Part shown: positions 22,693-57,869 of the stretch, one piece after another
How the letters are laid out: each line of letters opens with the position of its first letter
Position numbering within the stretch: position 1 is the first letter of the stretch
DNA from: Takakia lepidozioides
Lineage: Eukaryota; Plantae; Bryophyta
Assembly (NCBI GenBank): GCA_030704615.1
Contig: CM060733.1
Coordinates: 21,948,001-22,012,000 of the forward strand
Reading direction: 5' to 3'
Length of the DNA: 64,000 nt
Made by a program: the position numbers and the translations under genes
Notes under the pieces: generated by a model
Seen by the model: the letters and a program-made list of their open reading frames with translations, nothing else
The model's database searches: none
Told to the model about the DNA's origin: nothing

Positions 22693-22711
22693 CTAAAACC
22701 AGGCAAAGTGA

Positions 22712-22975
22712 AATATCCTTGAGGGACCCGGCCAGGCGTGGGGTCGGCCGCGAGGGTAGCGGGCAGGCTCGTACCCAAAACCCTAAACTTGTGAGGGCAG
22801 AAGGCAGGGAGGGAGGGGGTTGATCCGGGGCTTACCCCAAAAATACAAAGCACCGACGCCTGCCGCCCCGCGACTGCGCTGCGTGTGGCACGCGCGGGGT
22901 TGCGAGTCTCGTGTCTGTACGCACAGTGGTTCGCCGCGCTCGCATCGAGTCCCGTGTGCTCGGTCGCCTCCTTTT
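22712..22975 (+). ncRNA. TR: Telomerase RNA (TR) gene, candidate, about 260 nt (5' end estimated from the TATA position)
   Basis: Template AAACCCTAAAC at 22778-22788. Hairpin GGGTA-GCGGG-CAGG-CTCG-TACCC (22754-22776) directly 5' of the template. Pseudoknot: GGGGT 22816-20 pairs ACCCC 22834-38; CGGGGCTT 22826-33 pairs AAGCACCG 22848-55. P1: GAGGGACC 22721-28 pairs GGTCGCCTC 22962-70. TTTT at 22972-75. Its 3'-of-template sequence recurs at telomeric junctions at 37344, 40282 and 47321. Confidence 0.88.
22972..22975 (+). terminator. Pol III T-run terminator (putative)
   Basis: TTTT directly after the 3' strand of the P1 helix. Confidence 0.6.
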
Positions 22976-32673: not shown

Positions 32674-32816
32674 TGTGTTGGACGATCTCTCCAGCCAAGA
32701 CAATTTTGGATGTTTTCCATCCATTAGGTATTTTCTCTCCCCCCCCCGAGACAAGTTCACTTTCCGCAGTATATAAGCGGGGTGAGGGGTGCACATTGTA
32801 TCTCTTTTCCTTCTCT

Positions 32817-32860
32817 TTCCCACTGATGAGCTCACGCGCTGAGCGAAACTAGTTTGGGGA
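32817..32860 (+). ncRNA. Minimal type I hammerhead ribozyme (family A, 5' pLTR)
   Basis: TTCCCA-CTGATGA-GCTC(ACGCGCT)GAGC-GAAAC-TA-GTT-TGGGGA. Confidence 0.9.
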
Positions 32861-33402
32861 TTATAGAGATTCGCTTTGCTGCATCTTGTGTTCTTGTCTC
32901 TTTGTCTCATTGGCGGCGTTGTTGTTGTTGTTGAGTTTTAGATTTGATCTTCTGCATAGTTCATTGCATTCATTTGCTTTGTGTCTATTGTAGTGCATGT
33001 TTTAAACTCCTTTTCGAGTGTTACATGTTAGATCTCCTTCTAAGACTGCTCTTTAGTGTGTCTATTCTCTTTCTCAGAGATAGGTCACTATTCTCCTGTC
33101 CTTACAGTGAATTAGTTTCATCACACACACTTGCCTCTTGCATATACTTGCATTCGCACTTTAGAACGTTGCAACATCACTCCCACTCTGTTCTATTCTA
33201 GTTTTGTGTTTCAGGATCGATTCTTTTAGTTTTGATTCACAGGCTAGATATTTCTACAAGCTTTCTAAGGTGTCCATAACTGGCCCCCCTAAAAACTTGT
33301 TTGCACTTTGCTACTAATGCACCCGGTGCATTCGCGGTTCGAACTCTGTTGCACTGCTACATGTATTTGTTTCCACTCTTTTGTAAACCCTAAACATTTG
33401 TT

Positions 33403-34599
33403 ATGATGTTAGCTGCAACTTCTGAACCTTCTTCTTCCAAGCGTCCTAGGATAGAGATGAATAGTGATGGTGCTCCTGCAGAAGATCGACCGTCTTATTC
33501 GCCTCCAAGGGATTTATCTCCTACTCCAAGGCCGCAAGTTGGGATCTTTTTCAACCAGAATGATCATTCTCCAGACTTTGTGGATGCTATTCGCAAGTTG
33601 TTGGACAACTCTCTGGCGCAGTACAAGAAGGATTTCAAGAGACTTCAACGTCTCAAGGCAACTTCCGACAAACTCAGATCTCAAAAAGCTGCCGGTGAAA
33701 TTCCTCATGCTTGTAGAGTTGCTTGTCCGAAGTTGGTCATCTCTTCTGCCTCTGTCCAGACGTCTTTGGATGCTACTGTCCTAGCAGCCACTGTTGCTTA
33801 CCATTCAGCTTTGCAAACAGCTTTTATTCAAGCTCATTCCGATCTGGTACAAGAAGCTGAAGCTGTTTTGAGCAAATCCTCTGATGTTTTCATTGCTCGA
33901 CTCAGGGAGATCAACTTGCATGTGGATGTATCTTCTTGCACAGACCAGATTCAGGATTCTTCTTGGCTCTTTGATGAGCTTGACTTTGTGTGCACTCAAG
34001 CCACTACAGCCTGGTATGCCGGAATTTCTTGCTTTCGCGCCAACCACAACCTCGGTACTGCAGTGAGGGATAAGGCGTTACATGAAAGGAACCAAGCTAG
34101 AGATCAGGCCATGGCAGATGCTGATGTTCTTCCTACTGAGCCTACCATTGCCGAGCTAGTAAGGAAAGAGGTGCAGAAACAACTTTCCCACTCACGAAAG
34201 AAAACTTCTCTCTCTCCTACTCGCCCTAAGCAACATCAACGAGCGCGTTCTTCCTCTCCTAACCACAAGAGGCGACAACAGCGTGGCCGCTCACCTGCTC
34301 GACGAGTCTCCAAGACTCAACCTACCAGCCGAGGCACTTCAGCAAAAGCCAAGGTAACTTCCTCCAAGGCAAACTCTTCAAAGCAGCAGGGAAATGGCCA
34401 ACAGCGGAATGGGACTGCTCGCACCCGTTTCGCTGCATCGCGTTCATCTTCTCCGAGCAAATCCGCCCTACGTTCTCAGACCCGTTCTGGTTCTGGACAA
34501 CAAAAGTCGGGGCAAAACCAACAACAGAAGCTCAAGAAGAAGGTCACATGGGCAGATCCAAGCCGAAGAGAGCTCGCAAGCTCTTCTGGTGGCCGTTGA
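33403..34599 (+). CDS. PLE ORF1 (predicted helical/coiled-coil protein with a basic Ser/Arg-rich tail)
   Basis: 398-aa open frame directly after the 5' pLTR; overlaps the RT frame in -1. Confidence 0.75.
   Translation: MMLAATSEPSSSKRPRIEMNSDGAPAEDRPSYSPPRDLSPTPRPQVGIFFNQNDHSPDFVDAIRKLLDNSLAQYKKDFKRLQRLKATSDKLRSQKAAGEIPHACRVACPKLVISSASVQTSLDATVLAATVAYHSALQTAFIQAHSDLVQEAEAVLSKSSDVFIARLREINLHVDVSSCTDQIQDSSWLFDELDFVCTQATTAWYAGISCFRANHNLGTAVRDKALHERNQARDQAMADADVLPTEPTIAELVRKEVQKQLSHSRKKTSLSPTRPKQHQRARSSSPNHKRRQQRGRSPARRVSKTQPTSRGTSAKAKVTSSKANSSKQQGNGQQRNGTARTRFAASRSSSPSKSALRSQTRSGSGQQKSGQNQQQKLKKKVTWADPSRRELASSSGGR
34389..34459 (+). promoter_or_regulatory. -1 programmed ribosomal frameshift signal (slippery heptamer + H-type pseudoknot)
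   Basis: G GGA AAT at 34389-95 in the ORF1 frame; 6-nt spacer; 12-bp stem 34402-13 / 34424-35; loop TGCTCG (34416-21) complementary to CGAGCA (34454-59). Confidence 0.8.
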
Positions 34600-36455
34600 G
34601 GGATGTAGAAGGCTATAAGCTTTATCTTTTTTCTTGCAAGAGAGTCTCTCAGGCAGAGAACAGGTTAACCAACGTGGCCATCCACAACGTGGCCAATCGT
34701 CCACTCTCTTGTTTTGAAAAGAAGCTTTTAGGCCTAGGTTTGAGTTTTATTCCTCATCCTACTCCTCCTTCTCCCTCTTCTATTCTTGATGCTTATGACT
34801 CTTTGGCTCAATCTTTACGTCTTCGATATCACTTCAGGGATGCTAGAGATACACCCATTCCTCCTTTCAGAGTTCCTCAACCTTCTTGGGATCAGTGTGT
34901 GCGACTTCCTGCTTTGGAAAGCATTATCATCGAGGGTCGCAACATTGTAGAGACTCGGTTAAGGGAGGTGGCTCGCTCTGCCTACAGGTCTTCTATTCGA
35001 GGTCACCTCAAGACTGCGATACGCTGTCTGAGCAGAGATGAGTCCATCGTCATCAAGCCAGCAGACAAAAATCTTGGGTTGGTGATCATGCGGAAGGACT
35101 GGTATGTGGATGAGGGACACCGCCAACTCCACGATGGACAAGTTTACGAATCCGTGGCAGAGATCCCATTTGACAATCTCGCATATGGTTTGGATGCATT
35201 GCTCGCTTCCGCTCTCTTGTTTGGATTGATTGACAGGCAGACAAGGGACTTTTTGGCGCTCAAGCCCCAAGGGGGCTACCGACCCTGCATGTTTTATCTC
35301 GTGCCCAAAATGCACAAGCCTGTGGTGGTTGGGAGGCCGATTTGTTCATACAACGGATATGTTTTTGAGCACGCATCCAAGTGGTTGCATCACCATCTGT
35401 TTCCCATTCTGCTCGAGGAAGATAACCATTTGATAGATTCTATATCTTTGTTGAAAGATCTGTCGGATAGGCAACTTCCTGGCGACGTGCTTTTGTTCAC
35501 CTTTGATGTGGAGTCATTGTATCCTAGCATTCCTACTGGGGACGGGCTTCGACGATTGAAGGAGATGATTGCCGGCAAGCTCAAGTCACCTCAGTTTGAA
35601 AGATTCGTCCTGAGTCTTTCTCGCATGGTGTTGGAGAATAACTATCTTCAATTTGGCTCCAGCTATTGGCATCAGATCCGAGGCACGGCAATGGGTAGCA
35701 ACTTTGCTGTTGTTTATGCTTGTCTCTTTCTTTGCAGCTTAGAAAGAGAGTTGGCTGGTGCTGGAGGAGGCATGTGGCCTCTATACTACAAGAGATACAT
35801 CGATGATGGATTTGGAATTTGGGCAGGATCTCGGGCAAGTTTGGAGGCTTGGCTCGATGGATACAACTCTCTTAGTCCCACAATTCGGATTCAAAGGGTA
35901 ATCTCTGAGTCTACGGTTGACATTCTTGATATTCAGTTCTTCAAGGGAGCTGATTTTGTCAACCATGGGATTTTATCTTCGAGATGTCATCAAAAGGCAC
36001 TCAACAGATACCAGTATTTGCCATGGACCTCGTGTCATCCACGACACCAAAAACGAGCATTCATCATTGGCGAATTACGACGTTACACTTTGAGGGAGAG
36101 CACACGGGCAGGTTTTTCTGAGATCAGGCAACTGTTCTATGAGCGACTGCGTGCTCGAGGCTATCCAAAGTCTTTTATCTTGGAGTGTTTTGTGCTTTGT
36201 GACTATGCACAACGTGCTACACTGTTGACTTCAGAGTCCACTCGTAAGTTGACGGGCAAGCGGGCCCCCTTGGTTTTGAAACTTGAGCATTCGCGTTATA
36301 CTCAAGCTCTAAGCTTTGAGGGAGTCCTAAACCCTAAACTTCATGAGGGCTTTTTGAAAGTTCCGCAGTTAGTGTCTTTTGACAGACCTATGGTATGTTG
36401 GAAGAGGGCACGGAACTTGCGTTCCTATCTAGTTCGTGCTATGTTACAAATCTAG
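34548..36455 (+). CDS. PLE reverse transcriptase without GIY-YIG endonuclease; probably made as a -1 frameshift fusion with ORF1
   Basis: PLE motifs IKPADKNLGLV, YLVPKMHK, GRPI, FTFDVESLYPSIP, QIRGTAMGS, YKRYIDDGFGIW, SCHP...KRAFIIGELRRY, RARGYP. Ends at RNLRSYLVRAMLQI* with no Cys linker or GIY-YIG domain. The frame is open upstream to at least 34323. Confidence 0.93.
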   Translation: MGRSKPKRARKLFWWPLRDVEGYKLYLFSCKRVSQAENRLTNVAIHNVANRPLSCFEKKLLGLGLSFIPHPTPPSPSSILDAYDSLAQSLRLRYHFRDARDTPIPPFRVPQPSWDQCVRLPALESIIIEGRNIVETRLREVARSAYRSSIRGHLKTAIRCLSRDESIVIKPADKNLGLVIMRKDWYVDEGHRQLHDGQVYESVAEIPFDNLAYGLDALLASALLFGLIDRQTRDFLALKPQGGYRPCMFYLVPKMHKPVVVGRPICSYNGYVFEHASKWLHHHLFPILLEEDNHLIDSISLLKDLSDRQLPGDVLLFTFDVESLYPSIPTGDGLRRLKEMIAGKLKSPQFERFVLSLSRMVLENNYLQFGSSYWHQIRGTAMGSNFAVVYACLFLCSLERELAGAGGGMWPLYYKRYIDDGFGIWAGSRASLEAWLDGYNSLSPTIRIQRVISESTVDILDIQFFKGADFVNHGILSSRCHQKALNRYQYLPWTSCHPRHQKRAFIIGELRRYTLRESTRAGFSEIRQLFYERLRARGYPKSFILECFVLCDYAQRATLLTSESTRKLTGKRAPLVLKLEHSRYTQALSFEGVLNPKLHEGFLKVPQLVSFDRPMVCWKRARNLRSYLVRAMLQI

Positions 36456-36750
36456 AGGCTAGTTGTATTTGAGACATGCAGTTAGCTTCTAGTTTGGATG
36501 ATTATCCATTTTGGAGAGAACATTAGGATGTTTTTCATCTAGATTTTCATGCGTTGGATATTTCTCCCCTGCCGAGAAAACTTTGGATGTTTTTCATCTA
36601 AGTTTTCATGTGTTGGACGATCTCTCCAGCCAAGACAATTTTGGATGTTTTCCATCCATTAGGTATTTTCTCTCCCCCCCCGAGACAAGTTCACTTTCCG
36701 CAGTATATAAGCGGGGTGAGGGGTGCACATTGTATCTCTTTTCCTTCTCT

Positions 36751-36794
36751 TTCCCACTGATGAGCTCACGCGCTGAGCGAAACTAGTTTGGGGA
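36751..36794 (+). ncRNA. Minimal type I hammerhead ribozyme (family A, 3' pLTR)
   Basis: Identical to 32817-32860. Confidence 0.9.
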
Positions 36795-37317
36795 TTATAG
36801 AGATTCGCTTTGCTGCATCTTGTGTTCTTGTCTCTTTGTCTCATTGGCGGCGTTGTTGTTGTTGTTGAGTTTTAGATTTGATCTTCTGCATAGTTCATTG
36901 CATTCATTTGCTTTGTGTCTATTGTAGTGCATGTTTTAAACTCCTTTTCGAGTGTTACATGTTAGATCTCCTTCTAAGACTGCTCTTTAGTGTGTCTATT
37001 CTCTTTCTCAGAGATAGGTCACTATTCTCCTGTCCTTACAGTGAATTAGTTTCATCACACACACTTGCCTCTTGCATATACTTGCATTCGCACTTTAGAA
37101 CGTTGCAACATCACTCCCACTCTGTTCTATTCTAGTTTTGTGTTTCAGGATCGATTCTTTTAGTTTTGATTCACAGGCTAGATATTTCTACAAGCTTTCT
37201 AAGGTGTCCATAACTGGCCCCCCTAAAAACTTGTTTGCACTTTGCTACTAATGCACCCGGTGCATTCGCGGTTCGAACTCTGTTGCACTGCTACATGTAT
37301 TTGTTTCCACTCTTTTG

Positions 37318-37468
37318 TAAACCCTAAACCCTAAACCCTAAACTTGTGAGGCCCCCCTAAAACTTGTTTGCCCGGATCGTGTTTATCTTGCACCCGGTGC
37401 CTCCGCGTTGTACTGCTACACTTGTTTTGACGCTTTATGTGAACCCTAAACCCTAAACACTAAACTTG
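37318..37468 (+). repeat. Telomeric tract, TR-like linker, family B 3'-end fragment, telomeric tract
   Basis: (AAACCCT)3 to 37343; TTGTGAGG 37344-51; family B end 37350-37441; telomeric repeats 37442-37465. Confidence 0.85.
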
Positions 37469-38684
37469 AGCGATGATTTGTTGGAGGAATCCGCGAAAGC
37501 TGAGTTCATTCCTAGTTAAATCTAGAATGATAGGATGATTTTGTAGTGCAAATGTCCCTAGCATTATTAATTTTGCCTCTTTGATAGCCCTAGTGTTGAT
37601 GTTAAAGTCAAATGGTTCCAACAATTAATTTGGACCATTGACTAATTAATGCAGTCTTGACTTGGAGGCTAAATTAGTGCTTTAGTGGCATTATTATTGC
37701 CTTGGGAATTATCCCATATCGTTTGCACATAGTGAGGGTGCTTTTCTAGTATATAAGGATAGGCTTGGCTCTTAGGACTTCATCTCTTGGTGTTCCACTG
37801 ATGAGCTTGAGCAATCAAGCGAAACTTGTTTGGAATAAAACACCTTAACTCTTTTTGTGTCTCCACACTTAGAGAAGTCGAGAGTCTAGTCCTTGCCCGT
37901 CCGGGCAACTTGGATCGAAGGGGTGCTCGGCTCTGAGGGGAATCCCAACCCTTGGATACTTCCGAGGCCTTTTTTCTTTCCGAAGCACGGGCGTATAGAA
38001 CCTTCCGTTTGACGCCATCTTAGCCACCGCTTACAATGGGGAAGGCGGCTGGGGGTATATAGTAATCGTGTCGGGCAAGCTAATTTAGCCCCAACTACAC
38101 GGTTCCCCCTGTCGTACGCCCGATGGTCGGAGAGAAGGGATTTGGTTGATCCTCCCTCGAGTTCATCTCGAGCGATCAGAGAACTATGGGCATGCGCAAG
38201 TCTCTGCCGACCTAACCTTCTCGTCGATGACCTTATGCGGTAATCCCTCCCATTCTTCCTTAGAGGTACGAACCTCTTTTTGAAGGTGGGGCATATAAGT
38301 TTTCCAACTAGGGGTTGAGACTTGACCCTATGTTTGTGAGTGCCTTGAGCGCATGCTTGCCCATAGTGAGCAAGATTTTTGTCGCTAAACAAGGAGAAGC
38401 AAACATAAAAAAGCTTATGGTTGGAGCGAAAGTGCCTCATTCTTCAATTAGAGAACCTTATCTCGTGAGGGCGGGAGTCGTTGCATAAGACATAATAGTC
38501 TTATAGCATCCCTTTAGGCACGATAGGCGCACTTTGTATGCATTTGTCTTGGTTTCCATTGCATTTGTATTTGGGTCCTAACCGGCCCCCCTTAAAATTT
38601 ACTGTGTCTTTTTCCAGTATTTTTTCTACTTTTTGTTACCTTTGCAAGCCTTTGTTGACCACCCTAAACCCTAAACCCTAAACC
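37469..38684 (+). mobile_element. PLE family C, 5'-truncated (RT C-terminus + pLTR), ending in a telomeric tract
   Basis: Starts with a frame encoding AMICWRNPRKLSSFLVKSRMIG*, homologous to family A PMVCWKRARNLRSYLVRAMLQI*; USE at 37712-21; TATA at 37750; hammerhead; (ACCCTAA)n at 38661-38684. Confidence 0.8.
37789..37844 (+). ncRNA. Minimal hammerhead ribozyme (family C)
   Basis: TTCCA-CTGATGA-GCTTGA(GCAA)TCAAGC-GAAAC-TT-GTT-TGGAA; stem I extends through GGTGT/ACACC. Confidence 0.88.
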
Positions 38685-40281
38685 GTTTGTATCCCCTGCT
38701 TTAGATCGTTGCATTGTTATGTGCTCTGTGTCTATACGGCATGCCATAAACTCCCTCTCGAGTAGTGTATGGGAGATCTGCATCTAAGTTGTTCCCAGTG
38801 TGTCCATTCTCTTGCAAAACAGAGATAGGGTTCTTATTCTCCTGTGCATCCAGCGAAATAGTTCTCATACGCACATTTGCCTCTTGCATAGGTTTGCAGT
38901 TGCATTTCAGGACACCTCGCATACTTCTATTCTAGTTTCCTGTCTCTCAGGATCTCTCCTTTCAGGTTTGATTCACAGGATCTGAAATTTTTCCAGGGGT
39001 GCATAACTGGCCCCCCTAAAACTTGTTTGCCCGGATCGTGTTTATCTTGCACCCGGTGCATCCGCGTTGTACTGCTACACTTGTTTTGATGCTTTATGTG
39101 AACCCTAAACTTTCTTATAGTGTTAGCTGCAACACATCTTTAATCGCCTTCACGTAATGGAGGCAGATGTTGATCTTCATTCTTTTGACCAAGCTGCTCA
39201 TTCATGTGATGAGGCAACAATACGAAGACCGAGCCGTGTTTCTTCTTGGAGGTCGGAAGGTGGGGATCGTGGTTGGACACGTTCGGGACAACAGAGCTGC
39301 AGGCTTTAGCAAGACGATGGTTGCGCGATGGTCTGCGTGTGCAAAGCTCTTACGAGTTGTGCGTTCCTTTTGAAGTGGTTTCAGCCCTTACGACTTTGCA
39401 CAACATGCTCTAACTTCAGCATAATTGGTTGTTGCATAGTCATAAACTCACGGAGTTAGTTGTATTTGAGAGATATGCAATTGACTATTTGGATGATTTT
39501 TATTCTTTGGATCTAGTTCTCTCTTGTCGAGAACTTGTTTTCATCCACTGGATGACTTTCTCCCACCGAGACTTTTTGGACTATTCTCTCCGTACGAGAC
39601 GTCTGTTGGATGGTTTTTCTCCTCACGAGACATCTACTGGAAGATTGTCCACACGAGGCAGTTCACTCCTAGTAGTATATAAGCGGGGGGTGGGGTTTGT
39701 ATCTCATTCCTTTTCTTTCCCACTGATGAGCTCACGCGCTGAGCGAAACTAGTCTGGGGTCTATAAAGATTTGGCTTCGCTACTTTGCATGATCTTGCCT
39801 CGTGGTCTCACCCTTTGAAGTTGTCGAGTTTTAGATGCATTTGTATCCCCTGCTTTAGATCATTGCATTGTTATGTGCTCTGTGTCTATACGGCATGCCA
39901 TAAACTCCCTCTCGAGTAGTGCATGTGAGATCTGCATCTAAGTTGTTCCTAGTGTGTCCATTCTTTTGCAAAACAGAGATAGGGTTCTTATTCTCCTGTG
40001 CATCCAGCGAAATAGTTCTCATACGCACATTTTGTCTCTTGCATAGGTTTGCAGTTGCATTTCAGGACACCTCGCATACTTCTATTCTAGTTTCCTGTCT
40101 CTCAGGATCTCTCCTTTCAGGTTTGATTCACAGGATCTGAAATTTTTCCAGGGGTGCATAACTGGCCCCCCCCTAAAACTTGTTTGCCCGGATCGTGTTT
40201 ATCTTGCACCCGGTGCATCCGCGTTGTACTGCTACACTTGTTTTGATGCTTTATGTGAACCCTAAACCCTAAACCCTAAAC
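38685..40281 (+). mobile_element. PLE family B, non-autonomous unit of about 1155 bp in partial tandem, ending in a telomeric tract
   Basis: 38685-39110 repeats at ~39840-40267 (period about 1155); homologous to the family A pLTR; only ~350 bp internal sequence and no RT; (AACCCTA)n at 40258-40281. Confidence 0.82.
39717..39760 (+). ncRNA. Minimal hammerhead ribozyme (family B, GUC cleavage triplet)
   Basis: TTCCCA-CTGATGA-GCTCACGCGCTGAGC-GAAAC-TA-GTC-TGGGG. Confidence 0.9.
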
Positions 40282-42241
40282 TTGTGAGGGCAGGCTCTTC
40301 CATTTCCCGCACTGGCAAATGACCTACTGTTGTGTTTGCCTGCAATCTTTCTTATTCATGAAGCAGCGGCGCTCATAAGGTGATGGGGGAAGTATCATGC
40401 ACTTTGTAAATATGCACTTTCTCCTCAAGTATCCCAATTTGTTGCATTCTGCTGTGATCTCTTGAGATTCAGGTGTTGAATGTCACAGCGTCCCACTCCA
40501 CAAACGATCAAAGTTCTCTGTGGTGTCGCATCTATGTTTTACTTTTGATCAGTTTGCTCACTGTAGAATGCATGTTGGACATGGATAGCAACTGTGAAGA
40601 CCTGCTACTCACCTCGTGCATCCTCACTAACACACATCTTGATGTGGTGGTTTTTGGGACGGGCACAGGTGAGGGTCTTCACTCGATGTGTATTTTTTCA
40701 GTTTGCAGATGATCAAAGGACTTGGCGATGGTGACGATTGACGCTACATACTGCTTCAGTGGGGCATCCGATACGATTCGGCCTCTCAACCTTAATCCTT
40801 TTTGGGTTTTATGGGTTGTAACCTGATTATAAGTCAGTTTTCTGGTATGATACCAGTCTGATCTTTGGCACCATATTAGTGAGGTTTTCAACCTGATTGT
40901 AAATCAGTTTTCTGGCATGATACCAGTCTGAGCTTCGGCTGCATTTTGATATGGTGCTGGAGTACCATCTCCAGACCTTATAAGGCTATCCAATGATGCT
41001 TAAGATAGGCCTTCTCATGCTGATTTAACACGGTAAGTACCAAGCGGTCCTTTTTTACCATTGAGGTCAGAGTTCTAAATTTAAAATAGCCCCGGTTACA
41101 CTGTTTTAACTTAGAGATTACCAAGCAGCTGGCGTGATGGGCTTTTCAGATTACATAACACTTGTTTTAAGGTTGCCAAGCGATGCCATTGGAACCATCC
41201 TTTGAATTTGAAACAGGTTCAGTTTTACTATGTTAACTTGGAAAGTACCAAGTTGTACTTGACTTGGAAGAATACCAAGCAGTGGTCTTGTTGGGCTTTT
41301 TCAAAATACATAGGGGCTGGTTTAACTTATCGAACTACCTTTTGGAATACCCTTTGAGCTGGTGTTGTCTATAAAGTTATGATTATGCTCATTGTAGCAC
41401 TCCACTCTGATTGAGTTTTGGAGAGATGATTGGAAAACCAGATCCAGACCTTTTGTGCATTCATGGAACATAGAAATAGCATGCTGGCTGGTCTACATTA
41501 TCAGGCTGGGCTCTTGGAATTGCAACACCTGCAACTCATTCTTAAAGGCTCAAGTGTTTATGCTGATCTGGTATGTACCCCAAAATGATGCCAAAAAACA
41601 GCATCATGAGCGGTCGCAAGTAATAGTTGTTGCAGTAAGGCGATTTGATCCTCGATGATGATCATACCTTGGCCAGGGGACAACGACGCAATGGCGTGAG
41701 CACGTGAGCGCGTGCTCACGCAGGAGTGACGTGGCGTGAGCGTGCACCCACGCTGACGTGGCGTGAGCGTGATGTCATCAGGTTGACATGGCGGCAAATG
41801 CTGACGTGACACTGTATCCCCATCTGCCACGTCAACATGAACATGTGGCGCCTATAACCGAGGATGGTCCTATGACCATGGGATTAATGCAAAGAATCAT
41901 TACCTGAATAAAAGATGATTGTAGTGCATAACGACAGGAGAACATGTAGACTTCAAAAGGAGCAATGATGCATGTGCTTTTAAAAGTTGCCACTGAGACC
42001 TCACTGAGTATAGTTCGAAGCATAATGGAGGGATAAGGGATGCCATATCATTGCACCAACTACGATATTGCAAATGAATTGAATTGAATTGAATTTCCAT
42101 GACAATGTTGCAAATTGCACAGTTCATATGGTCGTCCACACACCAGATTGCATACTCATAGTCCATAAAAAGCACATTTCAGATTGCACATTCCAGATTG
42201 CACATTCACCACATTCCAGATACACGAAATGATAGTTGATG

Positions 42242-43624
42242 CTACCTATGTGTTGAATCCCGCTGCAACAGATTATCGACCTCGTTGAAACTCGGCGTGG
42301 CCTGGTGAACGAAATTGTCACGCTTTGGATCGCAAACCATCCTCTTCAAAAATATGTAATACAAATTTTTGCAGGGTATGAATTTTCCTCTCTTGCCCAA
42401 ACTGGTTAATAGCATATTCACAAAATCAGGACATGTGCAATTGGGGAAATTAGAAACCGTGACGTCATAGGCCCTATCATGAACAGCAAATGTCGAAGTG
42501 ATCATTGTGTACACCCAACCATACCCTGGATCGGGTACTTCCGTGGTGCTTGCAACACGAGCTTGGAGCATTCTTGCGGACTCCACTTTGCCGAAATGTT
42601 CAGCGGTTGGAGGGAAACGCCAAACCAGCTTTCCATCTCGTTTGGTTGGCCACAAGTCAGGATTTGTCGGAGGGACCCGAGATGACACAGAAATAGAAGC
42701 ACATGCATGCAGTTGGGGTTGTCTCGCAAGGGAAAAGCCTACCTCCTCCACCATTGCAATCTCCTGACTTGTGAGATGTGTTCCCATCTTGACGGGCCAA
42801 ATGGTTGGAGGAGCTGGCTTCATCACCACGGAAGGTCGCACAGTTCCATGCACACATCTACCACAATCGTCTGCGCAGAACCAGAACTTGTGGTTCTTGG
42901 CTTCTGGTTGGCCGTATGGACGCATCAAACCCGTGAAAGTAGGAGCAGGAGTCCAGGCACCGCCCCTGGATATAGATGAAGTACATTTCTCGAAATTAGT
43001 TGCCCTGATTGCTGTACATTTTACACGAGACCCTGCATTTGTGTGTTTTATGTGCCAAACGTGGTCAGAGCATGCGGACTCCAGCACATGAAGGGGGTAG
43101 TTTCTCTCCTACACCATTTCAGTGGTACTGTTTGATGCTAGAGCCTACCGTCGTGTCGGAGGTTCCTCCACAATGGAGATTCCGGAAATGGATCTGTCAT
43201 GCAGGGGAACACGAGGCTTCGAGAAGTTATCACGGTCTGCCCTGTGCGAATCGGATTCCGAACCAGGTTGGGTGTTCAATTTCCTCTTACAGTAGCCGAA
43301 TCTCTCATCCCCTTCAAGATGTGGAACTCTTGAAACAAGTGGCGTTCCCTGGGCATACATGCTCACCGCTCGTGCTATCTTGCTTGGATCCCCAGATCTA
43401 TTTGCAGCACGCAACATCAACTCCAGTTTGTCCGGACCTTTGCCACTAACCCCACATCGCAAGAAATCTCGGTATCTGGTTTGTTGTTGCAAGGCACGTA
43501 TCAGATCATCTGTTGTTGCCACATACAAATCCCGACCGCGTTTCCCAGACTGTTGCAACCATGCGTTGTGCACAGTCTCTGTCAAATTGCAAGATGGCAT
43601 GTCCGCCATTTCTTCAATGGACAT
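42242..43624 (-). pseudogene. SWIM zinc-finger (MULE-like transposase C-terminal) remnant
   Basis: NLTETVHNAW (MULE catalytic-E region) and PNCTCPDF...PCKNLYYIF (degenerate SWIM CxC...CxH); split ORFs, 5'-truncated by the tandem repeat. Confidence 0.6.
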
Positions 43625-43636
43625 GTTCTACATAGT

Positions 43637-45498
43637 GATCTGATATTAGTCCGAGACCTGTGAGAGGGTGTCTGGAACGTGCTCGCAAAGTTTGGAAGCT
43701 AACAAAAATGATTTGGATGGGCAACCATCCGTTCACCCGTTGAATGTATTCTGTTGGAGTTGTTATTGCTTTGGGACCTGTTGGACTGTGTTTCGTGTGC
43801 TCGCGATTTTTTTTTTCATTCCGTTTTTGAATGGGGCGTGTAATGTAGCCATATGCAACGTGCGTGCCAAATTTGGGAGCGATCAAAATTCATTTGGACC
43901 CAAAACCACAGTTTCTTCCCTGTTTTGCACTCCAAACTTGATTTGTTTTACTTCATGCACTCTTCATAGAGAGTTTCGCAATAGTGAGCGAAGAGAACAC
44001 TTTTTTTTTGGGGCATTTTTTATTGGTCCAAATTTTGGCGGGGGAGTAGCCGTGGGATGTTGGAAGCCGCAGAACAAAATTGAGCCAAAAACAAAATCGA
44101 TACGTGCCAGAAACCCCCACTGAAAGGCAGCGCAAACCTATTTATTGGCTTAAAATAAATTTAAATTCAATTAAATTGTGGAATGGCTTGCGTCGATGGG
44201 GAGGCAAATGATTTATTCCTCTATTGTGTCTCCGCACATGATGTGGGCAAAAGAGGGGCTTCAACCACATCCGTTCAATGGGTGCAATAGCCGTGCACGC
44301 ATTGCAAGATTTCTTTTTCGCATTGAACAAAAACCAGATGACAAGGGAACGCCTCATTGGACAATCGAACGATTTTTCGATTGATCTTGTATTACACTGG
44401 GACGTATCTGAGGGTACATTGAACACACTGGCCAAGTTTCAAAGCGAACGAAAATCATTTGGATGGGCAACCATCCGTTGGCCCATTGAACGAATTTCGA
44501 TTGATCTCATATTACTCTGGGGCCTCTTACATGGCACATTGAACACAGTGGCTAAGTCTCGAAGCGAACCAAAATCATTTCGATGGCCAACCATCCGTTG
44601 AACCATCGAATGAATTTTGATTGATCTGATATTAGTCCGGGACCTGTGAGAGGGTGTCTGGAACGTGCTCGCAAAGTTTGGAAGCTAACAAAAATGATTT
44701 GGATGGGCAACCATCCGTTCACCCGTTGAATGTATTCTGTTGGAGCTGGTATTGCTTTGGGACCTGTTGGGCTGTGTTTCGCGTGCTCACGACTTTTTTT
44801 TCATTCCGTTTTTGAATGGGGCGTGTAATGTAGCCATATGCAACGTGCGTGCCAAATTTGGGAGCGATCAAAATTCATTTTGGCCCAAAACCACAGTTTC
44901 TTCCCTGTTTTGCACTCTAAACTTGATTTGTGTTCTACTTCATGCACTCTTCATAGAAAGTTCTGTAATAGTGAGCGAAGAGAACACTTTTTTTTTGGGG
45001 CATTTTTTATTGGTCCAAATTTTGGCGGGGGAATAGCCGTGGGATGCTGGAAGCCGCAGAACAAAATTGAGTAAAAAACAAAATCGATACGTGCCAGAAA
45101 CCCCCACTGAAAGGCAGCGCAAACCTATTTATTGGCTTAAAATAAATTTAAATTCAATTAAATTGTGGAATGGCTTGCGTCGATGGGGAGGCAAATGATT
45201 TATTCGTCTGTTGTGTCTTCGCACACGTGTCGCACACATGCGAGCAAAAGAGGGGCTTCAACCACATCCGTTCAATGGGTGCAATAGCCGTGCACGCATT
45301 GCAAGATTTCTTTTTCGCATTGAACAAAAACCAGATGACAAGTGAACGCCTCATTGGACAATCGAACGATTTTTCGATTGATCTCGTATTACACTGGGAC
45401 GTATCAGAGGGTACATTGAACATCCTGACCAAGTTTCAAAGCGAACGAAAATCATTTGGATGGGCAACCATCCGTTGGCCCATTGAACGAATTTCGAT
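43637..45498. repeat. ~986-bp tandem duplication with ~120-bp subrepeats
   Basis: GATCTGATATTAGTCCG.GACCTGTGAGAGGG at 43637 and 44623; recurring GGATGGGCAACCATCCGTT. Confidence 0.85.
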
Positions 45499-46688
45499 GA
45501 TGTGTTACAGCTAACACTGTAAGAAAGTTTAGGGTTCACATAAAGCGTCAAAACAAGTGTAGCAGTACAACGCGGATGCACCGGGTGCAAGATAAACACG
45601 ATCCGGGCTAACAAGTTTTAGGGGGTCAGTTATGCACCCCTGGAAAATTTTCAGATTCTTGTGAATCAAACCTGAAAATGAGAGATCCTGAGAGACAGGA
45701 AACTAGAAGGGTTTAGGATTTTTAGGGTTTAGGGTGGTCAACAAAGGCTTGCAAAGGTAATAAAAAACAGAAAAAATACTGGAAAAAGACACAGTAAATT
45801 TTAAGGGGGGCCGGTTCGGACCCAAATACAAATGCAATGGAAACCAAGACAAATGCATACAAAGTGCGCCTATCGTGCCTAAAGGGATGCTATAAGACTA
45901 TTATGTCTTATGCAAGGACTCCCGCCCTCACGAGATAAAGTTCTCTAATTGAAGAATGAGGCACTTTCGCTCCAACCGTAAGCTTTTTTATGTTTGCTTC
46001 TCTTTGTTTAGCGACAAAAATCTTGCTCACTATGGGCAAGCATGCGCTCAAGGCACTCACAAACATAGGGTCAAGTCTCAACCCCTAGTTGGAAAACTTG
46101 TATGCCCCACCTTCAAGTTTAGGGTTTGGGGTTTGGGGTTTATGGGTTTAGGGTTAGGGCCTACAAAAGAGTGGAAACAGATACATGTAGCAGTGCAACA
46201 GAGTTCGAACCGCGAATGCACCGGGTGCATTAGTAGCAAAGTGCAAACAAGTTTTTAGGGGGGCCAGTTATGGACACCTTAGAAAACTTGTAGAAATATC
46301 TAGCCTGTGAATCAAAACTAAAAGAATCGATCCTGAGACACAGAAAACTAGAATAGAACAGAGTGGGAGTGATGTTGCAACGTTCTAAAGTGCAAATGCA
46401 AAGATATGCAAGAGGCAAGTGTGTGTGATGAAACTAATTCACTGTAAGGACATGAGAATAGTAACCTATCTCTAAGAAAGAGAATAGACACACTAAAGAA
46501 CAGTCTTAGAAGGAGATCTAACATGCAACACTCGAAAATGAGTTTAAAACATGCACTACAATAGACACAAAACAAATGAATGCAATGAACTATGCAGAAG
46601 ATCAAATCTAAAACTCAACAACAACAACAACGCCGCCAATGAGACAAAGAGACAAGAACACAAGATGCAGCAAAGCGAATCTCTATAA

Positions 46689-46732
46689 TCCCCAAACTAG
46701 TTTCGCTCAGCGCTTGAGCTCATGAGTGGGAA
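46689..46732 (-). ncRNA. Family A hammerhead with a mutated core (CTCATGA), probably inactive
   Basis: Reverse complement reads TTCCCA-CTCATGA-GCTCAAGCGCTGAGC-GAAAC-TA-GTT-TGGGGA. Confidence 0.75.
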
Positions 46733-47957
46733 AGAGAAGGAAAAGAGATACAATGTGTACCCCTCACCCCGCTTATATACTGCGGAAAGTGAACTTGTCT
46801 GGGGGGGGAGAGAAAATACCTAATGGATGGAAAACATCCAAAATTGTCTTGGCTGGAGAGATCGTCCAACACATGAAAACTTAGATGAAAAACATCCAAA
46901 GTTTTTTCGGTAGCGGAGAAATATCCAACGCATGAAAATCTAGATATAAAACATCCTAATGATCTCTCCAAAATGGATAATCATCCAAACTAGAAGCTAA
47001 CTGCATATCTCAAATACAACTAGCCTCTAGATTTGTAACATAGCACGAACTAGATAGGAACGCAAGTTCCGTGCCCTCTTCCAACATACCATAGGTCTGT
47101 CAAAGGACGCTAACTAGGAAATTTCAAAAAGCCCTCATGAAGTTTAGGGTTTAGGACACCCTCAAAGCTTAGAGCTTGAGTATAATGCGAATGCTCAAGT
47201 TTCAGAACCAAGAGGGCCCGCTTGCCCGTCAACTTACGAGTGGACTCTGAAGTCAACAGTGTAGCACGTTGTGCATAGTCACAAAGCACAAAATATTCCA
47301 AGATAAAAGACTTTGGATAGCCTCACAAGTTTAGGGTTTACGGTTTAGGGTTTACGGTTTTTTAGGGTTTTAGGGTTTAGGGTTTAGGGGTTTAAGAAAA
47401 GGGTTTTTGTTTTTGTTTTTATTTTTGTTTTTTTAGGGTTTAGGGGTTTAGGGTTTAGGGTTCACATAAAGCGTCAAAACAAGTGTAGCAGTACAATGCG
47501 GATGCACCGGGTGCAAGATAAACACGATCCGGGCAAACAAGTTTTAGGAGGGCCAGTTATGCACCCCTGGAAAAATTTCAGATCCTGTGAATCAAACCTG
47601 AAAGGAGAGATCCTAAGAGACAGGAAACTAGAATAGAAGTATGCGAGGTGTCCTGAAATGCAACTGCAAACCTATGCAAGAGACAAAATGTGCGTATGAG
47701 AACTATTTCGCTGGATGCACAGGAGAATAAGAACCCTATCTCTGTTTTGCAAAAGAATGGACACACTAGGAACAACTTAGATGCAGATGTCACATGCACT
47801 ACTCGAGAGGGAGTTTATGGCATGCCGTATAGACACAAAGCACATAACAATGCAATGATCTAAAGCGGGGGATACAAACGCATCTAAAACTCGACAACTT
47901 CAAAGGGTGAGACCACGAGGCAAGATCATGCAAAGTAGTGAAGCCAAATCTTTATAG

Positions 47958-48001
47958 ACCCCAGACTAGTTTCGCTCAGCGCGTGAGCTCATCAGTGGGA
48001 A
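47958..48001 (-). ncRNA. Family B hammerhead ribozyme
   Basis: Reverse complement of 39717-39760. Confidence 0.9.
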
Positions 48002-49768
48002 AGAAAATGAATGAGATACAAACCCCACCCCCCGCTTATATACTACTAGGAGTGAAATGCCTCGTGTGGACAATCTTCCAGTGGATGTCTCGTGAGGAGA
48101 AAACCATCCAACAGATGTCTCGTACGGAGAGAATAGTCCAAAAAGTCTTGGTGGGAGAAAGTCATCCAGTGGATGAAAACAAGTTCTTGACAAGAGAGAA
48201 CTAGATCCAAAGAATAAAAATCATTCAAATAGTCAATTGCATATCTCTCAAATACAACTAACTCCGTGAGTTTATGACTATGCAACAACCAATTATGCTG
48301 AAGTTAGAGCATGTTGTGCAAAGTCATAAGGGCTGAAACCACTTCGAAAGGGTTTAGGGTTTAGGATTTAGGGTGACTTTTTGAAGTTGTCGAGTTTTAG
48401 ATGCGTTTGTATCCCCTACTTTAGATCATTGCATTGTTATGTGCTCTTTCTCTATACGGCATGCCATAAACTCCCTCTCGAGTAGTGCATGTGAGATCTG
48501 CATCTAAGTTGTTCCTAGTGTGTCCATTCTCTTGCAAAACAGAGATAGGGTTCTTATTATCCTGTGCATCCAGTGAAATAGTTCTCATACGCACATTTGC
48601 CTCTTGCATAGGTTTGCAGTTGCATTTCAGGACACCTCGCATATTTCTATTCTAGTTTCCTGTCTCTCAGGATCTGTTCTTTCAGGTTTGATTCACAGGA
48701 TCTGAAATTTTTCCAAGGGTGCATAACTGGCCTCCCCTAAAACTTGTTTGCCCGGATCGTGTTTATCTTGCACCCGATGCATCCGCGTTGTACTGCTACA
48801 CTTGTTTTGACGCTTTATGTGAACCCTAAATTTTCTTATAGTGTTAGCTGCAACACATCTTTAATCGCCTTAGGTTAAAGAGAATCCAATTGTAGATTTA
48901 AGAGCAGAGGCTCAAACATTTAGGGTTTAGAGTTTAGGGTTAGGGGTTTAGGGTGGTCAACAAAGACTTGCAAAGGTAACAAAAAATAGAAAAAATACTG
49001 GAAAAAGACAGTAAATTTTAAGGGGGGCCGGTTCGGACCCAAATACAAATGCAATGGAAACCAAGACAAATGCATACAAAGTGCGTCTATCGTGCCTAAA
49101 TGGATGCTATAAGACTATTATGTCTTATGCAAGGACTCCCACCCTCACGAGATAAGGTTCTCTAATTGAAGAATGAGGCACTTTCGCTCCAACCGTAAGC
49201 TTTTTTATGTTTGCTTCTCCTTGTTTAGCAACAAAAATCTTGCTCACTATGGGCAAGCATGCGCTCAAGGCACTCACAAACATAGGGTCAAGTCTCAACC
49301 CCTAGTTGGAAAACTTATATGCCCCACCTTCAAAAAGAGGTTCGTACCTCTAAGGAAGAATGGGAGGGATTACCGCATAAGGTCATCGACGAGAAGGTTA
49401 GGTCGACAGAGGCTTGCGCATGCCCATAGTCCTCTGATCGCTCGAGATGAACTCGAGGGAGGATCAACCAAGTCCCTTCTCTCCGACCATCGGGCGTACG
49501 ACAGGGGGAACCGTGTAGTCAGGGCTAAATTAGCTTGCCCGACACGATTACCATATACCCCCAGCCGCCTTCCCCATTGTAAGCGGTGGCTAAGATGGCG
49601 TCAAACGGAAGGCTCTATACGCCCGTGCTTCGGAAAGAAAAACGGCCTCGGAAGTATCCAAGGGTTGGGATTCCCCTTGGAGCCGAGCACCCCTTCGATC
49701 CAAATTGCCCGGGCGGGCAAGGACTAGACTCTCGACTTTTCTAAGTGTGGAGACACAAAAAGAGTTAA

Positions 49769-49824
49769 GGTGTTTTATTCCAAACAAGTTTCGCTTGATT
49801 GCTCAAGCTCATCAGTGGAACACC
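49769..49824 (-). ncRNA. Family C hammerhead ribozyme
   Basis: Reverse complement of 37789-37844. Confidence 0.88.
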
Positions 49825-49910
49825 AAGAGATGAAGTCCTAAGAGCCAAGCCTATCCTTATATACTAGAAAAGCACCCTCACTATGTGCAAACGATATGGG
49901 ATAATTCCCA

Positions 49911-50168
49911 AGTACAAGAAGACATACCCTACAACCCTTGCTACGAAAGCCTTGCAAAAATTTATGGAGTGAAGGCAAGTGGAGCTTCTGCCTGCCTTCA
50001 CAAAGTTTGCAAAGCTTCAATAACCTTGAAACGATCTGGTGACAACAAACCCTAAGTACTTAAACCTCACTATCAGCAAACTCAGGCCGCAGAGCCCTAA
50101 GAAACTCAGACCGCCACAAGAAAACCTAAATTATCCCGATGACAAAACCCCGATGACAGGGAGAAGGG
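49911..50168 (+). repeat. ~260-bp segment duplicated at 53663-53920
   Basis: AGTACAAGAAGACATACCC...GACAGGGAGAAGGG occurs at both positions. Confidence 0.85.
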
Positions 50169-51520: not shown

Positions 51521-52913
51521 TCAGGTGTAGCCAATAGAGTCAGCCTCTACAGTTTCATGTAATTTGTACAGGAGATAACCAAGCATCTTCCAATGCCTTC
51601 TCAGCAGTACCGCAATGTGGGGATTGCATAAGTACTCCCAGCTGATACAAATCTGACTGGGGAGTGTAGTGGCCGTCCTCCAACATGTCCTCGCTCCAAT
51701 CAGCAAAAGGCAGAAATCCTTCTGGCAATTTGAATGGAGATTGAGCTACCGTTTCAAGGTCTATGAGCATGAACCCCTCCGCTGAAACCTGCACAATATT
51801 GGGCAACCGGATATCCCTATGGACGAGGTTTGCCGCATGCAGGACAGACAAAGCCTTTCACACGTCCCGAGCCAACAGCTTCATATCGTTCTCCGACCTC
51901 AACAACGGGGAGTAGCCCAGCGTACTGATCACAATATTATAAGTACCTCTACGATCCATTTCAGGCTCTGAAATTACCTCCGGAAGAGAAGGGACTCCTC
52001 GTGCAACATTGTAGGCCTGCCGAATCAGTTCAAAAGTGGTCATTTTCTCAATACAATACCTTGGGAAGTTCCTTATTGCCTTCCGAACACTGCTCGGCTG
52101 AAAGTATATCGTCCTATCCCCACATTCTTCTTCAGAAAACATTGCCCGCCGGCCTGGCACTTCCGGGATTGACTCCACCATCTTCTTCATGATCTCATAG
52201 GCATTGCCAAGGCTGAGTAACAAGAAGAGGCGGTCAGAAAGGTTCAAGACATTAAGACATGGGTTGATTCGAAATGCCCTCTTTCCATCCTTGTCGATAT
52301 AAACCCATTGGAAGGCTGTGCCTGCTGCGATATAGCCGAGAATGAATTGAACCTCCCCATAAAACATCGGACTAAGTGGCATCATCTTTCTCAAAATATC
52401 CTCTTCAGCAGCAGGTAAGCCGGCCAGCTTGTCCTCACCAACCAGAAAAGTGCATCCACCGGCAATTCCAATCATGTCAGGCCTCAGCTGTTTTCCAATA
52501 GTTTTGGTGCTAGAAGTACCTGTCTTGCTTTCACTAGTATTGAACAAAAGCTGGGCATTCAAAGCAGGCATGCAGAACCGGTCATACAAAGAGAATACCG
52601 TCTTAAAACAAAATCCCACAAATATGGATACGTCCTGCTCTGATACTGGAGGGGCAACATTGGCAAGCAACAATGCTGATAGCGTCACAGGGAGCTCTGA
52701 CTCATCTGCCTCCACGATGAAGTCCCATGCCTGAGAGGGCAACTTCTGTCGGAGTGTCAAGTAGGTAATTTTGCACACAGGAAGCTTTCCGTGATCCGTA
52801 GGAAACAATACTGCTGTTAGCTCACAAGAGTTTTGTGGGAGCTTGATAGGCTGAGGCCGCAGCAGAGAATGGATCCACATTCCAGACCTTTCAATCAATT
52901 CTGGTGGACACAA
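51521..52913 (-). pseudogene. Crinkler-like REase (PD-(D/E)xK) + protein kinase gene with an in-frame stop
   Basis: LRPDMIG...FLVGEDK (REase-like) followed by LVHRDIRLPNIV...MLIDLE...SDLYQLG (kinase); TGA at 51858-60 splits two same-frame ORFs. Confidence 0.65.
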
Positions 52914-54239
52914 ATAACAATTCAGTTAAGCATAGCAAGGAAGACCAGAACAGAGTAACAAGAAGCAAGGAAATGCACAATGGTGGTAATTATCATACTA
53001 ATGAAGTAATTAATTAACATATAAGACACATAAGATTCGTGATGGTTCATCTGAAATAACAACCAAAGGAGCCTCCTCATCATCAAACTTTAAAACATAA
53101 AAAAAGACAAGCTCAGACTGCCCTAGGCAACGTGATCTCACACTCTAACCATCATCCCATGTTGTTGAGTTGCATCTATCATGTAGTGCACAACCAGAAT
53201 TCCACATATAAATAACAAACAACCGTGTCTTTCAAAGGACCCTCCTGCGCTGGAAAGCTGGCTGTCATGGTGGACATACCGATACTGCCAATTGGGAGCA
53301 TATGTTCGCAATGTAAGTGTTCGCTTTCTCCATACACTGTGCAACTCGTTACTCTAGCTAATCATTGTCCAGACAAACTCCAGAAACAAAACCTAAGTAT
53401 CAAGAACTCCACAAATACTCGATGCAACAAATAAAGACAACCCTAGGCACTCATGAGAAATGAGGGGTTTGAACGATACTACTCATATTTGCAGCCACGC
53501 ATCAAACAAACCCTAGCTATGAAAAGAATCAAGAAAAGATCCCAGCATCAGCAACCTAGGTGCCAAGATTCTACACAACCTCTGAATTACACCAAACGGG
53601 ACGTTGGGGATTTAGGGGACCGTGCGGGAGTAAACATAACCTACAGGACAAACAGCTCCAGTAAGTACAAGAAGACATACCCTACAACCCTTGCTACGAA
53701 AGCCTTGCAAAAATTTATGGAGTGAAGGCAAGTGGAGCTTCTGCCTGCCTCACAAAGTTTGCAAAGCTTTCAATAACCTTGAAACGATCTGGTGACAACA
53801 AACCCTAAGTACTTAAACCTCACTATCAGCAAACTCAGGCCGCAGAGCCCTAAGAAACTCAGACCGCCACAGGAAAACCTAAATTATCCCGATGACAAAA
53901 CCCCGATGACAGGGAGAAGGGTTTACCACTGCCTTTACTTGTGTCTGTTGTTGAAGGAGCATCAACCTGCTTAAAGGTATAGTCTCCTGGGTCCAAGGAA
54001 TCGCTCCCAAGCAGCAGAACTCCCTCTTGATTAAACAAATCCCCATATTGATTTGCATTGTCATCGGGTGTCTAGAGGGCAAGTATGAAAATAAAGTAAC
54101 CCCACCTTCAAAGGGAGATCGTTAACCGAGCGTCACTACCCTAACACTAGTCATAGCTAAGAAACAAACTAATCATGAAGAATTGTCCCTTTTCTTTCCA
54201 CTATTGTTCTATTGTTGTTCTATCTTGAATCTTTGGCAT

Positions 54240-55816: not shown

Positions 55817-56925
55817 CGGCAAACAACGTCCTATGAGTACAATCTATCTTGAATCTGAGCAGATTCCATCCTACGGAATAAATAAATTATTTGCAAACCC
55901 TGATGGGTGAACGCAGCCAAGAAACTTACACCACACCTAGTTGCCAGGAGTGCGCAACCCTGAGTGCACATCCAGAATTCGACATCTAAATAACAAACAA
56001 CCGTGTCTGCCAAGGACCCAACCCAGGAACAAGAATTGCTAACACTTTCTAGTCCACTTTTTACCCTCCACACTTTACACAGTCACTTCAAGATCTCTCC
56101 TCTTGCCCATGGTGATACAAGGGAGGGAGGTAGAAGGTGCTGTAGATTCTTGGGAGAGCTTTGCCACTTCTGCTGCTGATAGAGTCATGGAAGGAAACTA
56201 ATTATCTGTGGTAGAGCAGTAAATTGGTGGACCCATGAGATCAAGCTCAAGATTGCTGAGAGGCAGGCGCTCTAAAAGGACTGCTGTAATATCAAAGATG
56301 AAAAAACGCTCTGGTCTAGATACTACCAACTGCGTAAAGAGGTCAATCAGCTTGTAAGGGATCAGAAGAGGCTTTACTGGGAGAAGTTGTACAGTGACAT
56401 AAACTTAACCCACCATGGTCATATTGACAAAAGATTCTGGTTGGCCTTACAGCCAATCATCATAACACCAACAATTGCACAACCCTACATGTACCCTACC
56501 TGGATCTTGGCAAGAACCACAACAGTGATAGACAATGTATATAGACTGGGAAAACATAACACACCAAAGAGAAAGAAGACAAGAATGCAGAACGCTTTTA
56601 ACCTGCCCTCATCTGCCGCAACCTGATCGACCTTAAGAAAATAAGTGTCCTTTTAAGTCTGGAAAACTTGGACATTCAATGAGCTAGCAAAACACATTTT
56701 AGCACAAAACCCTAACTGCTCCGGCTCACCTACACGGTCCTAAAGCATACCTGCATGAGTATGTGGGCGTGTAGAACAACAGGTCATAATCAAGCAAAGA
56801 TTCTGAATTCAAGGTGCCAAGAATCTACATAACCTGGGCCCACGGTACGGTGTGGCTAACATGCAGTAATGAACTTTAGTGCTGCGGTGCACACTTGCGC
56901 AAGAGACCGATAGCGAACAAGTACA

Positions 56926-56961
<36 letters not shown>

Positions 56962-57869
56962 TAAAGAGAGCTTGAAATTGCTGGGAGGGAAGCGAATGGA
57001 AGCTGCGGGTGCGACAATCCAATCTTGAATCTGAGCAGATTCCATCCTACGGAATAAATAAATTATTTGCAAACTTTAAGCACCTGACCTTGTGTTCATT
57101 GACTGCTTAAACTACTCGAACTCAAGACAGAAAAGCAAAGAAAAGCAACAAAACCAGGAAGAAAAGCAAAACCCTGCTACCTGCTGTAGGTGCTACAAAG
57201 TATCCCCACAACAGACGTATGTGACCAACCAAGAATACTCGAGGTGTGCTGAGGTGCTCAACCCTTACAGTAGCCATAGCTGAGAAAAAAACTAATCTGC
57301 AAACCCTCAGCACTTAGGAATGGTTTGACACAATATTCTGAAAGATCGTTGATTCACAAACTCAGAGCTAACAAAAACGAGTCCAGCCAAAGGCTCAATG
57401 ACGAAACAGATAAACTGCAAAACCCTAAGCACTTGATCTTCTCTTCATTGACTGCTTGCACTAAAAGAGCCTCCCCATCATCAGACTTGCAGACATAAAA
57501 ACAGACGGGCTTATACTGCCCTAGGCACCCATCAACGTTCACCAGACTCTCTCATAACTTCTCATTAGTGAAGTATTAGCTCATATTCCACACATGGGGC
57601 AAACCAAAGCATCAGACACAACAAAAGGAAACCAAATGAATAACTATCCCAGCAACAATGGACATCATTAAGGTAAATTTTCAGCCCACGTAAATAGATA
57701 CTAAATTCAGCTTGCAATACCTGGCAATACTGGCAATACTTGGGTTGGCTTCCGCTTTTTGGACAAAATTGCTTTCTTGAATCCTCTTCTGTCCCCCCTG
57801 GCAGCCTCTGGAAACTCTTCATCCATAATCTCATCGAGCTCCTGCTCTGACAAAACTTCACAAAACAAA

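Follow-up and report, generated by a model that had tools for sequence, protein, structure and literature searches.

In rodents and other vertebrates, the insertions known as TERC-ITS (ITS, interstitial telomeric sequence) carry an interstitial telomeric tract that is preceded by bases from the region 3' of the telomerase RNA (TR) template. Such a trace lies beside the tract at mouse TERC-ITS loci (Nergadze 2007, PMC2246262), and a Xenopus locus carries a TR fragment adjoining the template (Sola 2021, PMC8537989). Mouse TERC-ITS are rare and include an inverted piece of 31-118 nt that stems from TERC's 3' domain. Telomeric repeats also accompany endonuclease-deficient Penelope-like elements of the Athena/Coprina type, for which published accounts describe two open reading frames (ORFs), a reverse transcriptase (RT) without GIY-YIG, hammerhead ribozymes, telomeric repeats in reverse-complement orientation, and truncated copies arranged in head-to-tail chains with added repeats (PMC8557442, PMC5537684, PMC13564844). 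Here we analyzed a 64,000-nt stretch of DNA from the moss Takakia lepidozioides (assembly GCA_030704615.1, contig CM060733.1, positions 21,948,001 to 22,012,000 of the forward strand; hereafter the window), which holds chains of such elements interspersed with TTTAGGG-type tracts and, at 22.7 kb, a candidate TR. Several of the tracts are joined to their neighbors through bases identical to those immediately 3' of the candidate's template. We propose that telomerase probably paired non-telomeric DNA ends with TR up to 12 nt past the template, copied back from there and added repeats, on which endonuclease-less Penelope elements then primed.

All motif counts and junction tallies given below refer to the window. 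The motif CCCTAAAC followed directly by TTGTGAGG occurs four times, at 22781 in the candidate TR and at three tract ends (37336, 40274 and 47321, the last on the minus strand). The octamer TTGTGAGG itself follows a tract ending in CCCTAAAC at 37344-51 (+), 40282-89 (+) and 47321-28 (-), all of them sites whose coordinates the first-pass annotation of this DNA had given correctly, and at 22789 it comes directly after the 11-nt template. At 40282 the match to the TR flank is longer, amounting to 12 nt and reaching 40293. When two mismatches were permitted the count of the 16-mer was still four, whereas shuffled sequences averaged 0.06 occurrences and never exceeded 2, and the observation made in the annotation is thus confirmed; once the first match is given, the rough chance of two additional 8-nt matches is 4e-10. 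The octamer turns up a fifth time at 53748 (-), where it lacks a neighboring tract and was set aside, so that by itself it is at chance level, and it is adjacency to a tract that constitutes the signal. After leaving out those repeats that are part of an element (33384, 36326, 39101, 45527 and 47142), we counted nine de novo tract junctions, five of which end in ...TAAAC and continue with TTG, as does the TR 3' flank. At the three isolated tracts that lie apart from the chains (14531, 55289 and 57870), TTG never comes after ...TAAAC. No piece of TR other than bases contiguous with the template was detected in the window, the longest match outside the template being the 12 nt at 40282, and none of the junctions contains a copy of TR sequence 5' of the template or reads into the hairpin that lies there.

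The composition of each tail was resolved by comparison with the normal sequence of the DNA to which it is joined, TR bases absent from that sequence being scored as foreign and TR matches already present in the broken end as shared. Normal sequence was read from other family copies in the window at 37344, 47328 and 46116, and from contig loose ends at 40282 and 37466. For the latter, contigs from four runs of one sample, possibly the source of the assembly, were aligned over 36250-40850, and the reading of the first aligned base from loose ends was verified using a loose end at 37625. At 37344-37351 (+), six foreign bases are followed by two (GG) that are shared with the truncated piece of family B at 37350-37465, and at 47321-47328 (-) four bases (GAGG, 47321-24) are shared with truncated family A and four (47325-28) are foreign, next to a degenerate tract of 134 nt (47329-47462). 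For both sites other copies gave the division that the annotation had claimed, with TTGTGA foreign and only GG shared at the first and a 4-nt microhomology plus four foreign bases at the second. The tail at 40282-40293 (+), after a tract at 40258-40281, matches TR over the 12 nt that had been reported, but it is not wholly copied: seven bases are foreign, and five (GGCAG) are shared with a fourth repeat family starting at 40289, whose other copies, in all four runs, align no further upstream than 40289 and are preceded there by a different sequence that ends in GATGGC. Likewise, at 37466-37468 (+), after the tract 37442-37465, two bases (TT) are foreign and one (G) is shared with truncated family C (37468-38684), other copies of which align from 37468 only in all four runs. 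At 46114-46116 (-), beside the degenerate tract 46117-46159, all three bases (TTG) are shared with truncated family C and none is foreign. The shorter matches that had been noticed at 46114 and 37466 therefore held up, and the two junctions left unsettled by the annotation (40282 and 37466) fit the pattern once normal family sequence was read from contigs.

The tails match TR over 3, 3, 8, 8 and 12 nt and comprise 0, 2, 4, 6 and 7 foreign bases. They come after two element families, meet four different sequences and always stop where the joined DNA matches TR. In other words, every set of foreign bases is identical to the TR sequence beside the template, and the switch sits where the broken end matches TR. 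Shared bases sum to 15 across the five footprints, whereas random joins would average 0.69 each (P about 4e-4). An extra joint, in which tract plus TTGTG meets family B at 38995 with a 4-nt match, agrees with the ladder and would lower P to about 5e-5; it was found in a single run (X2), its intervening sequence is unknown, and we regard it as tentative and kept it outside the main statistic. The last shared base is C in four of the five footprints, and the clearest junction inside the template ends in AGG. The flank is G-rich by composition, and a preference for C-ending ends is suggestive only. Among the other four de novo junctions, those at 45707-45735 (-) and 48348-48374 (-) share one base (T) and CCT, respectively, inside the template, the latter representing ordinary healing; the junction at 38661-38685 (+) has no clean TR flank, and that at 48918-48954 (-) has none and lies beside 47 nt of unknown origin, next to a family B piece that is inverted within the minus-strand chain (48380-48918). 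The tracts at 46117 and 47329 contain unique variant repeats although the flanking elements are 95-97% identical, which argues for separate synthesis events. Variants in the 47329-47462 tract include TTTACGG and TTTAAGAAAAG, which resemble the 3' boundary of family A and possibly reflect priming by the element that was aborted between successive rounds of repeat addition.

The locus at 22.7 kb is very likely a telomerase RNA gene, judged by its resemblance to land-plant TR genes, which combine a USE (upstream sequence element) with a TATA box at RNA polymerase III (Pol III) spacing, a template at most 200 nt from the USE, a P1.1 stem, a short G/C-rich P2, a longer P3, a closing helix, a downstream stem and a T-run (PMC8287931, PMC12133305). 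The USE of a plant type-3 small nuclear RNA (snRNA) promoter, TCCCATATCG, lies at 22651-22660 (+) and recurs at 37712, 49901 (-), 62538 and 62683. It is followed 24 nt later by a TATA box at 22685-22690 (+), a spacing of the Pol III type and comparable to the 23-24 nt found at Pol III promoters of Arabidopsis (PMC8287931). The putative transcript of about 265 nt (22710-22975, +; start estimated) ends in a run of only four T (22972-75). The predicted template AAACCCTAAAC (22778-22788, +), which lacks G, is 11 nt long and so exceeds the minimum of one repeat plus 1 nt; it starts 118 nt after the USE and fits the TTTAGGG tracts. Directly 5' of it, a hairpin of 5+4 drawn base pairs (22754-22776, +; RNAfold -7.5 kcal/mol) resembles the P1.1 boundary element and stops one base ahead of the template's A run. 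The footprint source, TTGTGAGGGCAG (22789-22800, +), belongs to a 27-nt linker ahead of a pseudoknot that can be drawn from this single sequence near published dimensions, with a 5-bp P2 (22816-20/22834-38) and a P3 of eight positions with one mismatch (22826-33/22848-55); the pseudoknot and the 3' strand of the closing helix span 22816-22862 (+). That helix (22733-39/22856-62), likewise from a single sequence, is a perfect 7 bp and encloses template and pseudoknot as expected for P1c, and a further stem can be drawn downstream. The contig that we read as this locus (joint 37726-40266) occurs once per run at a depth like that of other unique junction contigs. The TR call is thereby also supported by apparent features that are independent of the footprint tails. 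As a separate observation, family C has a USE region of which 21 nt are identical to the putative TR promoter; a TATA follows after 28-30 nt, and the region leads into the hammerhead (37706-37830 (+), ~49790-49907 (-)).

The elements joined to the tracts belong to three families, A, B and C, all of which have hammerhead cores and end in telomeric repeats that are C-rich on the sense strand, in keeping with the terminal repeats of endonuclease-deficient Penelope-like elements. The family A element at 32674-37343 (+) contains ORF1 (33403-34599) and the RT-encoding ORF2 (34548-36455), with a hammerhead in its terminal repeat and a 26-nt tract at its end. Its RT has 635 aa and relatives that are 46-51% identical, with close ones in Selaginella, Cryptomeria and Closterium. 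The ORF stops without an endonuclease, and the relatives share this layout, the GIY-YIG family not being listed for them; a Pfam scan of the 635-aa ORF gave no match. Within ORF2 (36326-36350, 47131-47155), a 14-nt telomeric tract leads into TTCATGAGGGC, which is similar to the TR flank, and the stretch codes for LNPKLHEG. This TR-like stretch (36326-50) was not counted as a footprint: it codes for LNPKLH, LNP(K) is conserved among relatives, and the in-frame tract is also found in the Selaginella and Cryptomeria elements. Two chains of element repeats and tracts, extending from 32674 to 49912, run outward from both ends of a 5.2-kb core (40294-45498, no strand assigned), with the direction of the chains inferred from the tract strand. 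Their layout is that reported for endonuclease-deficient Penelope-like elements (PMC8557442). Unlike Athena/Coprina-type elements, which occupy chromosome ends, the chains are now interstitial, with genes and other repeats flanking both sides. The outer chain ends at 32674 and 49912 meet two different repeats with overlaps of 1-3 nt and no target duplication, and the minus-strand chain opens with a family B copy that reaches 28 nt past its terminal repeat and meets the core without an added tract (45499-45536).

In the Penelope model, cDNA is primed on a G-rich tail, which implies that repeat synthesis began on the side of the tract away from the element's 3' end, where the tails are located. 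The healed 3' ends would mostly be 5'-truncated Penelope cDNA ends or breaks in those elements: four lie in families A-C, while the end at 40282 belongs to the fourth repeat and would be a break outside them. Such an end may anneal by 1-5 bp to the stretch of TR from +1 to +12 downstream of the template, whereupon telomerase would copy the 0-7 leftover flank bases, cross the template, halt at the P1.1-like hairpin and add repeats. An endonuclease-less Penelope RNA could then use the CCCUAAAC at its own terminus to pair with the G-rich tail just made and undergo reverse transcription, with rounds repeating until the chain rejoins the chromosome. Priming on TR outside the template, which the annotation had suggested, is supported by the ladder of foreign lengths ending on microhomology; that TERT did the copying, in which order the events took place and that each junction arose separately is what we infer from it. 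The 27-nt linker between template and pseudoknot may leave the flank accessible, and since the template lacks G, C-ending ends could presumably pair only in the G-rich flank. A broader version, in which the telomerase of this lineage lacks an effective template boundary on the 3' side and usually heals non-telomeric, especially C-ending, DNA by flank priming, in relay with a Penelope RT that hands over the cDNA end or itself uses TR, so that internal breaks are patched genome-wide, appears doubtful to us.

Several observations weigh against flank priming by telomerase and the TR call that goes with it. The whole candidate TR folds no better than shuffled sequences (z 0.49), no transcript of it was found, and no homolog was found among the metagenome loci with a 19-mer match or at the loci of anthranilate synthase relatives. 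The metagenome scan with the 19-mer, run without a control scan, returned seven loci, three of them being one locus and none a TR homolog or Penelope junction; when synteny was examined by way of relatives of a single anthranilate synthase exon, searched alone, the 13 loci obtained had no USE and no TR, and an Rfam search gave no match for the candidate. In vitro, telomerase usually starts within the template or at its edge. In addition, both plus-strand family B tracts (37442 and 40258) are 24 nt long, and one contig with a C-B junction of the type seen at 45708 has a depth of 150 in run X2, as against about 50-95 for other junction contigs, contig depth not being equivalent to copy number. 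The equal tract lengths and the double-depth junction suggest that junctions can be duplicated. Some of the junctions may therefore be secondary copies of earlier ones, which would lower the number of events and leave the origin of the tails unchanged. Carried further, telomerase could have made a few founder junctions and most tails would be second-hand: read-through Penelope RNAs or break-induced DNA copies carrying tract and tail would prime by microhomology within the tail and generate the same ladder. Such copying would also suit the exactly 14 nt that A, B and B each show past the element's own repeat, as well as the B copy at 45499 that overruns its terminal repeat. It is unlikely to account for most tails, in view of their presence after both A and B and of the tracts at 46117 and 47329, which resemble no other tract; even then, the founder tail would still be derived from TR.

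Alternatively, the Penelope RT, which is a sister enzyme to TERT, might have jumped from a truncated template to TR and copied flank and template, with repeats arising by slippage on element RNA ends. That four of the five healed ends are element ends, and that variants in the 47329 tract resemble the family A 3' boundary, would agree with this; yet a free RT has no reason to halt at the 5' boundary of the template, and no junction enters the hairpin. Moreover, the 40282 end lies outside families A-C and tracts of 24-134 nt require reiterated synthesis, and we consider such a jump improbable. We give still less credence to capture of TR pieces through end-joining or another RNA-templated repair polymerase, with telomerase acting only later. 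Non-TERT copying has been left open for mouse TERC-ITS, but only template-contiguous bases appear here, with no other TR piece in the window. We find it least credible that the tail represents either chance or the constant terminus of some unrelated repeat, with the 22.7-kb locus being no more than another junction. The same 19-mer does occur in five independent metagenome loci, none of them TR-like, but by our own estimate a collection as large as this should yield a few matches to a 19-mer by chance alone. The variable ladder of foreign and shared bases refutes a fixed repeat terminus, the case the annotation had named in advance as fatal to its proposal: there are five foreign lengths, two element families and four joined sequences, with tail ends always on microhomology. 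The 22.7-kb locus, for its part, has a promoter and helices and no element end beside its 11-nt tract. We regard this last reading as already largely refuted.

Flank priming by telomerase would place these junctions close to the vertebrate examples, and the footprints work like the flank part of TERC-ITS. They are nevertheless not classed as TERC-ITS, the longest TR fragment being 12 nt as opposed to at least 31 nt there, and no distal piece accompanies them. They also differ from the mouse loci in that the flank is present at five of nine junctions, ends on microhomology with ordinary DNA, occurs in a plant host and is linked to Penelope cDNA ends. Where telomeres are added de novo or an ITS is inserted with microhomology of 1-5 nt, a break end pairs over a short stretch and repeats follow, and the junctions at 48348 and 45707 are of this kind. 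As described, that pairing is in register with the repeat, at the template or the alignment region; at the footprints it extends up to +12 outside. In the literature searched we found no report of such a TR-flank trace in plants or Penelope elements, a search on the motif itself returned nothing relevant, and no description of TR-flank linkers at Penelope junctions was found, the primary papers of 2007 and 2017, which might mention them, lying outside the search. The kind of trace is already known from mouse; what sets the present case apart is that the host is a plant, that a high share of the junctions carry the trace, that a distal TR piece is absent, that the annealing ladder can be measured and that Penelope cDNA ends are involved. 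The junctions provide genomic evidence that repeats between endonuclease-less Penelope copies have their start on telomerase RNA and not on the element, which is usually only assumed, and show how far beyond the template a plant telomerase may pair its primer in vivo, a template without G being the suggested reason. Recurrent linkers beside interstitial tracts would reveal the sequence that adjoins the template in TR and offer a cheap means of finding or confirming TR genes where the TR is unknown.

Beyond the window, the Penelope loci of Selaginella, Cryptomeria and Closterium and three Logan contigs showed no recurrent tail, with few de novo junctions available there. At one AT-rich locus, present in three metagenomes (L003:695-731, L005:5280-5316, L007:472-508), the same 8-nt tail comes after a short tract, and this may represent either the same footprint in a different moss or a chance match. 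A further sequence (L001:1232-1343) consists of tandem units in which telomeric tracts are followed by TTGTGAGG or TTGTGGGG. The window itself is plant DNA, as judged from an intron-split anthranilate synthase and the plant USE motifs. Between direct repeats of 259 bp (49910-50168, 53663-53921) lies a 351-aa ORF with an LRPD motif (51858-52913, -), Crinkler-like by eye and without a match in a Pfam scan, and a short fragment of large-subunit rRNA sequence is present at 56899-57059. Finally, a 118-bp tandem duplication at 62449-62711 carries a USE in each copy, the first with a TATA about 29 nt later, and is possibly an snRNA-type promoter or a remnant of one.

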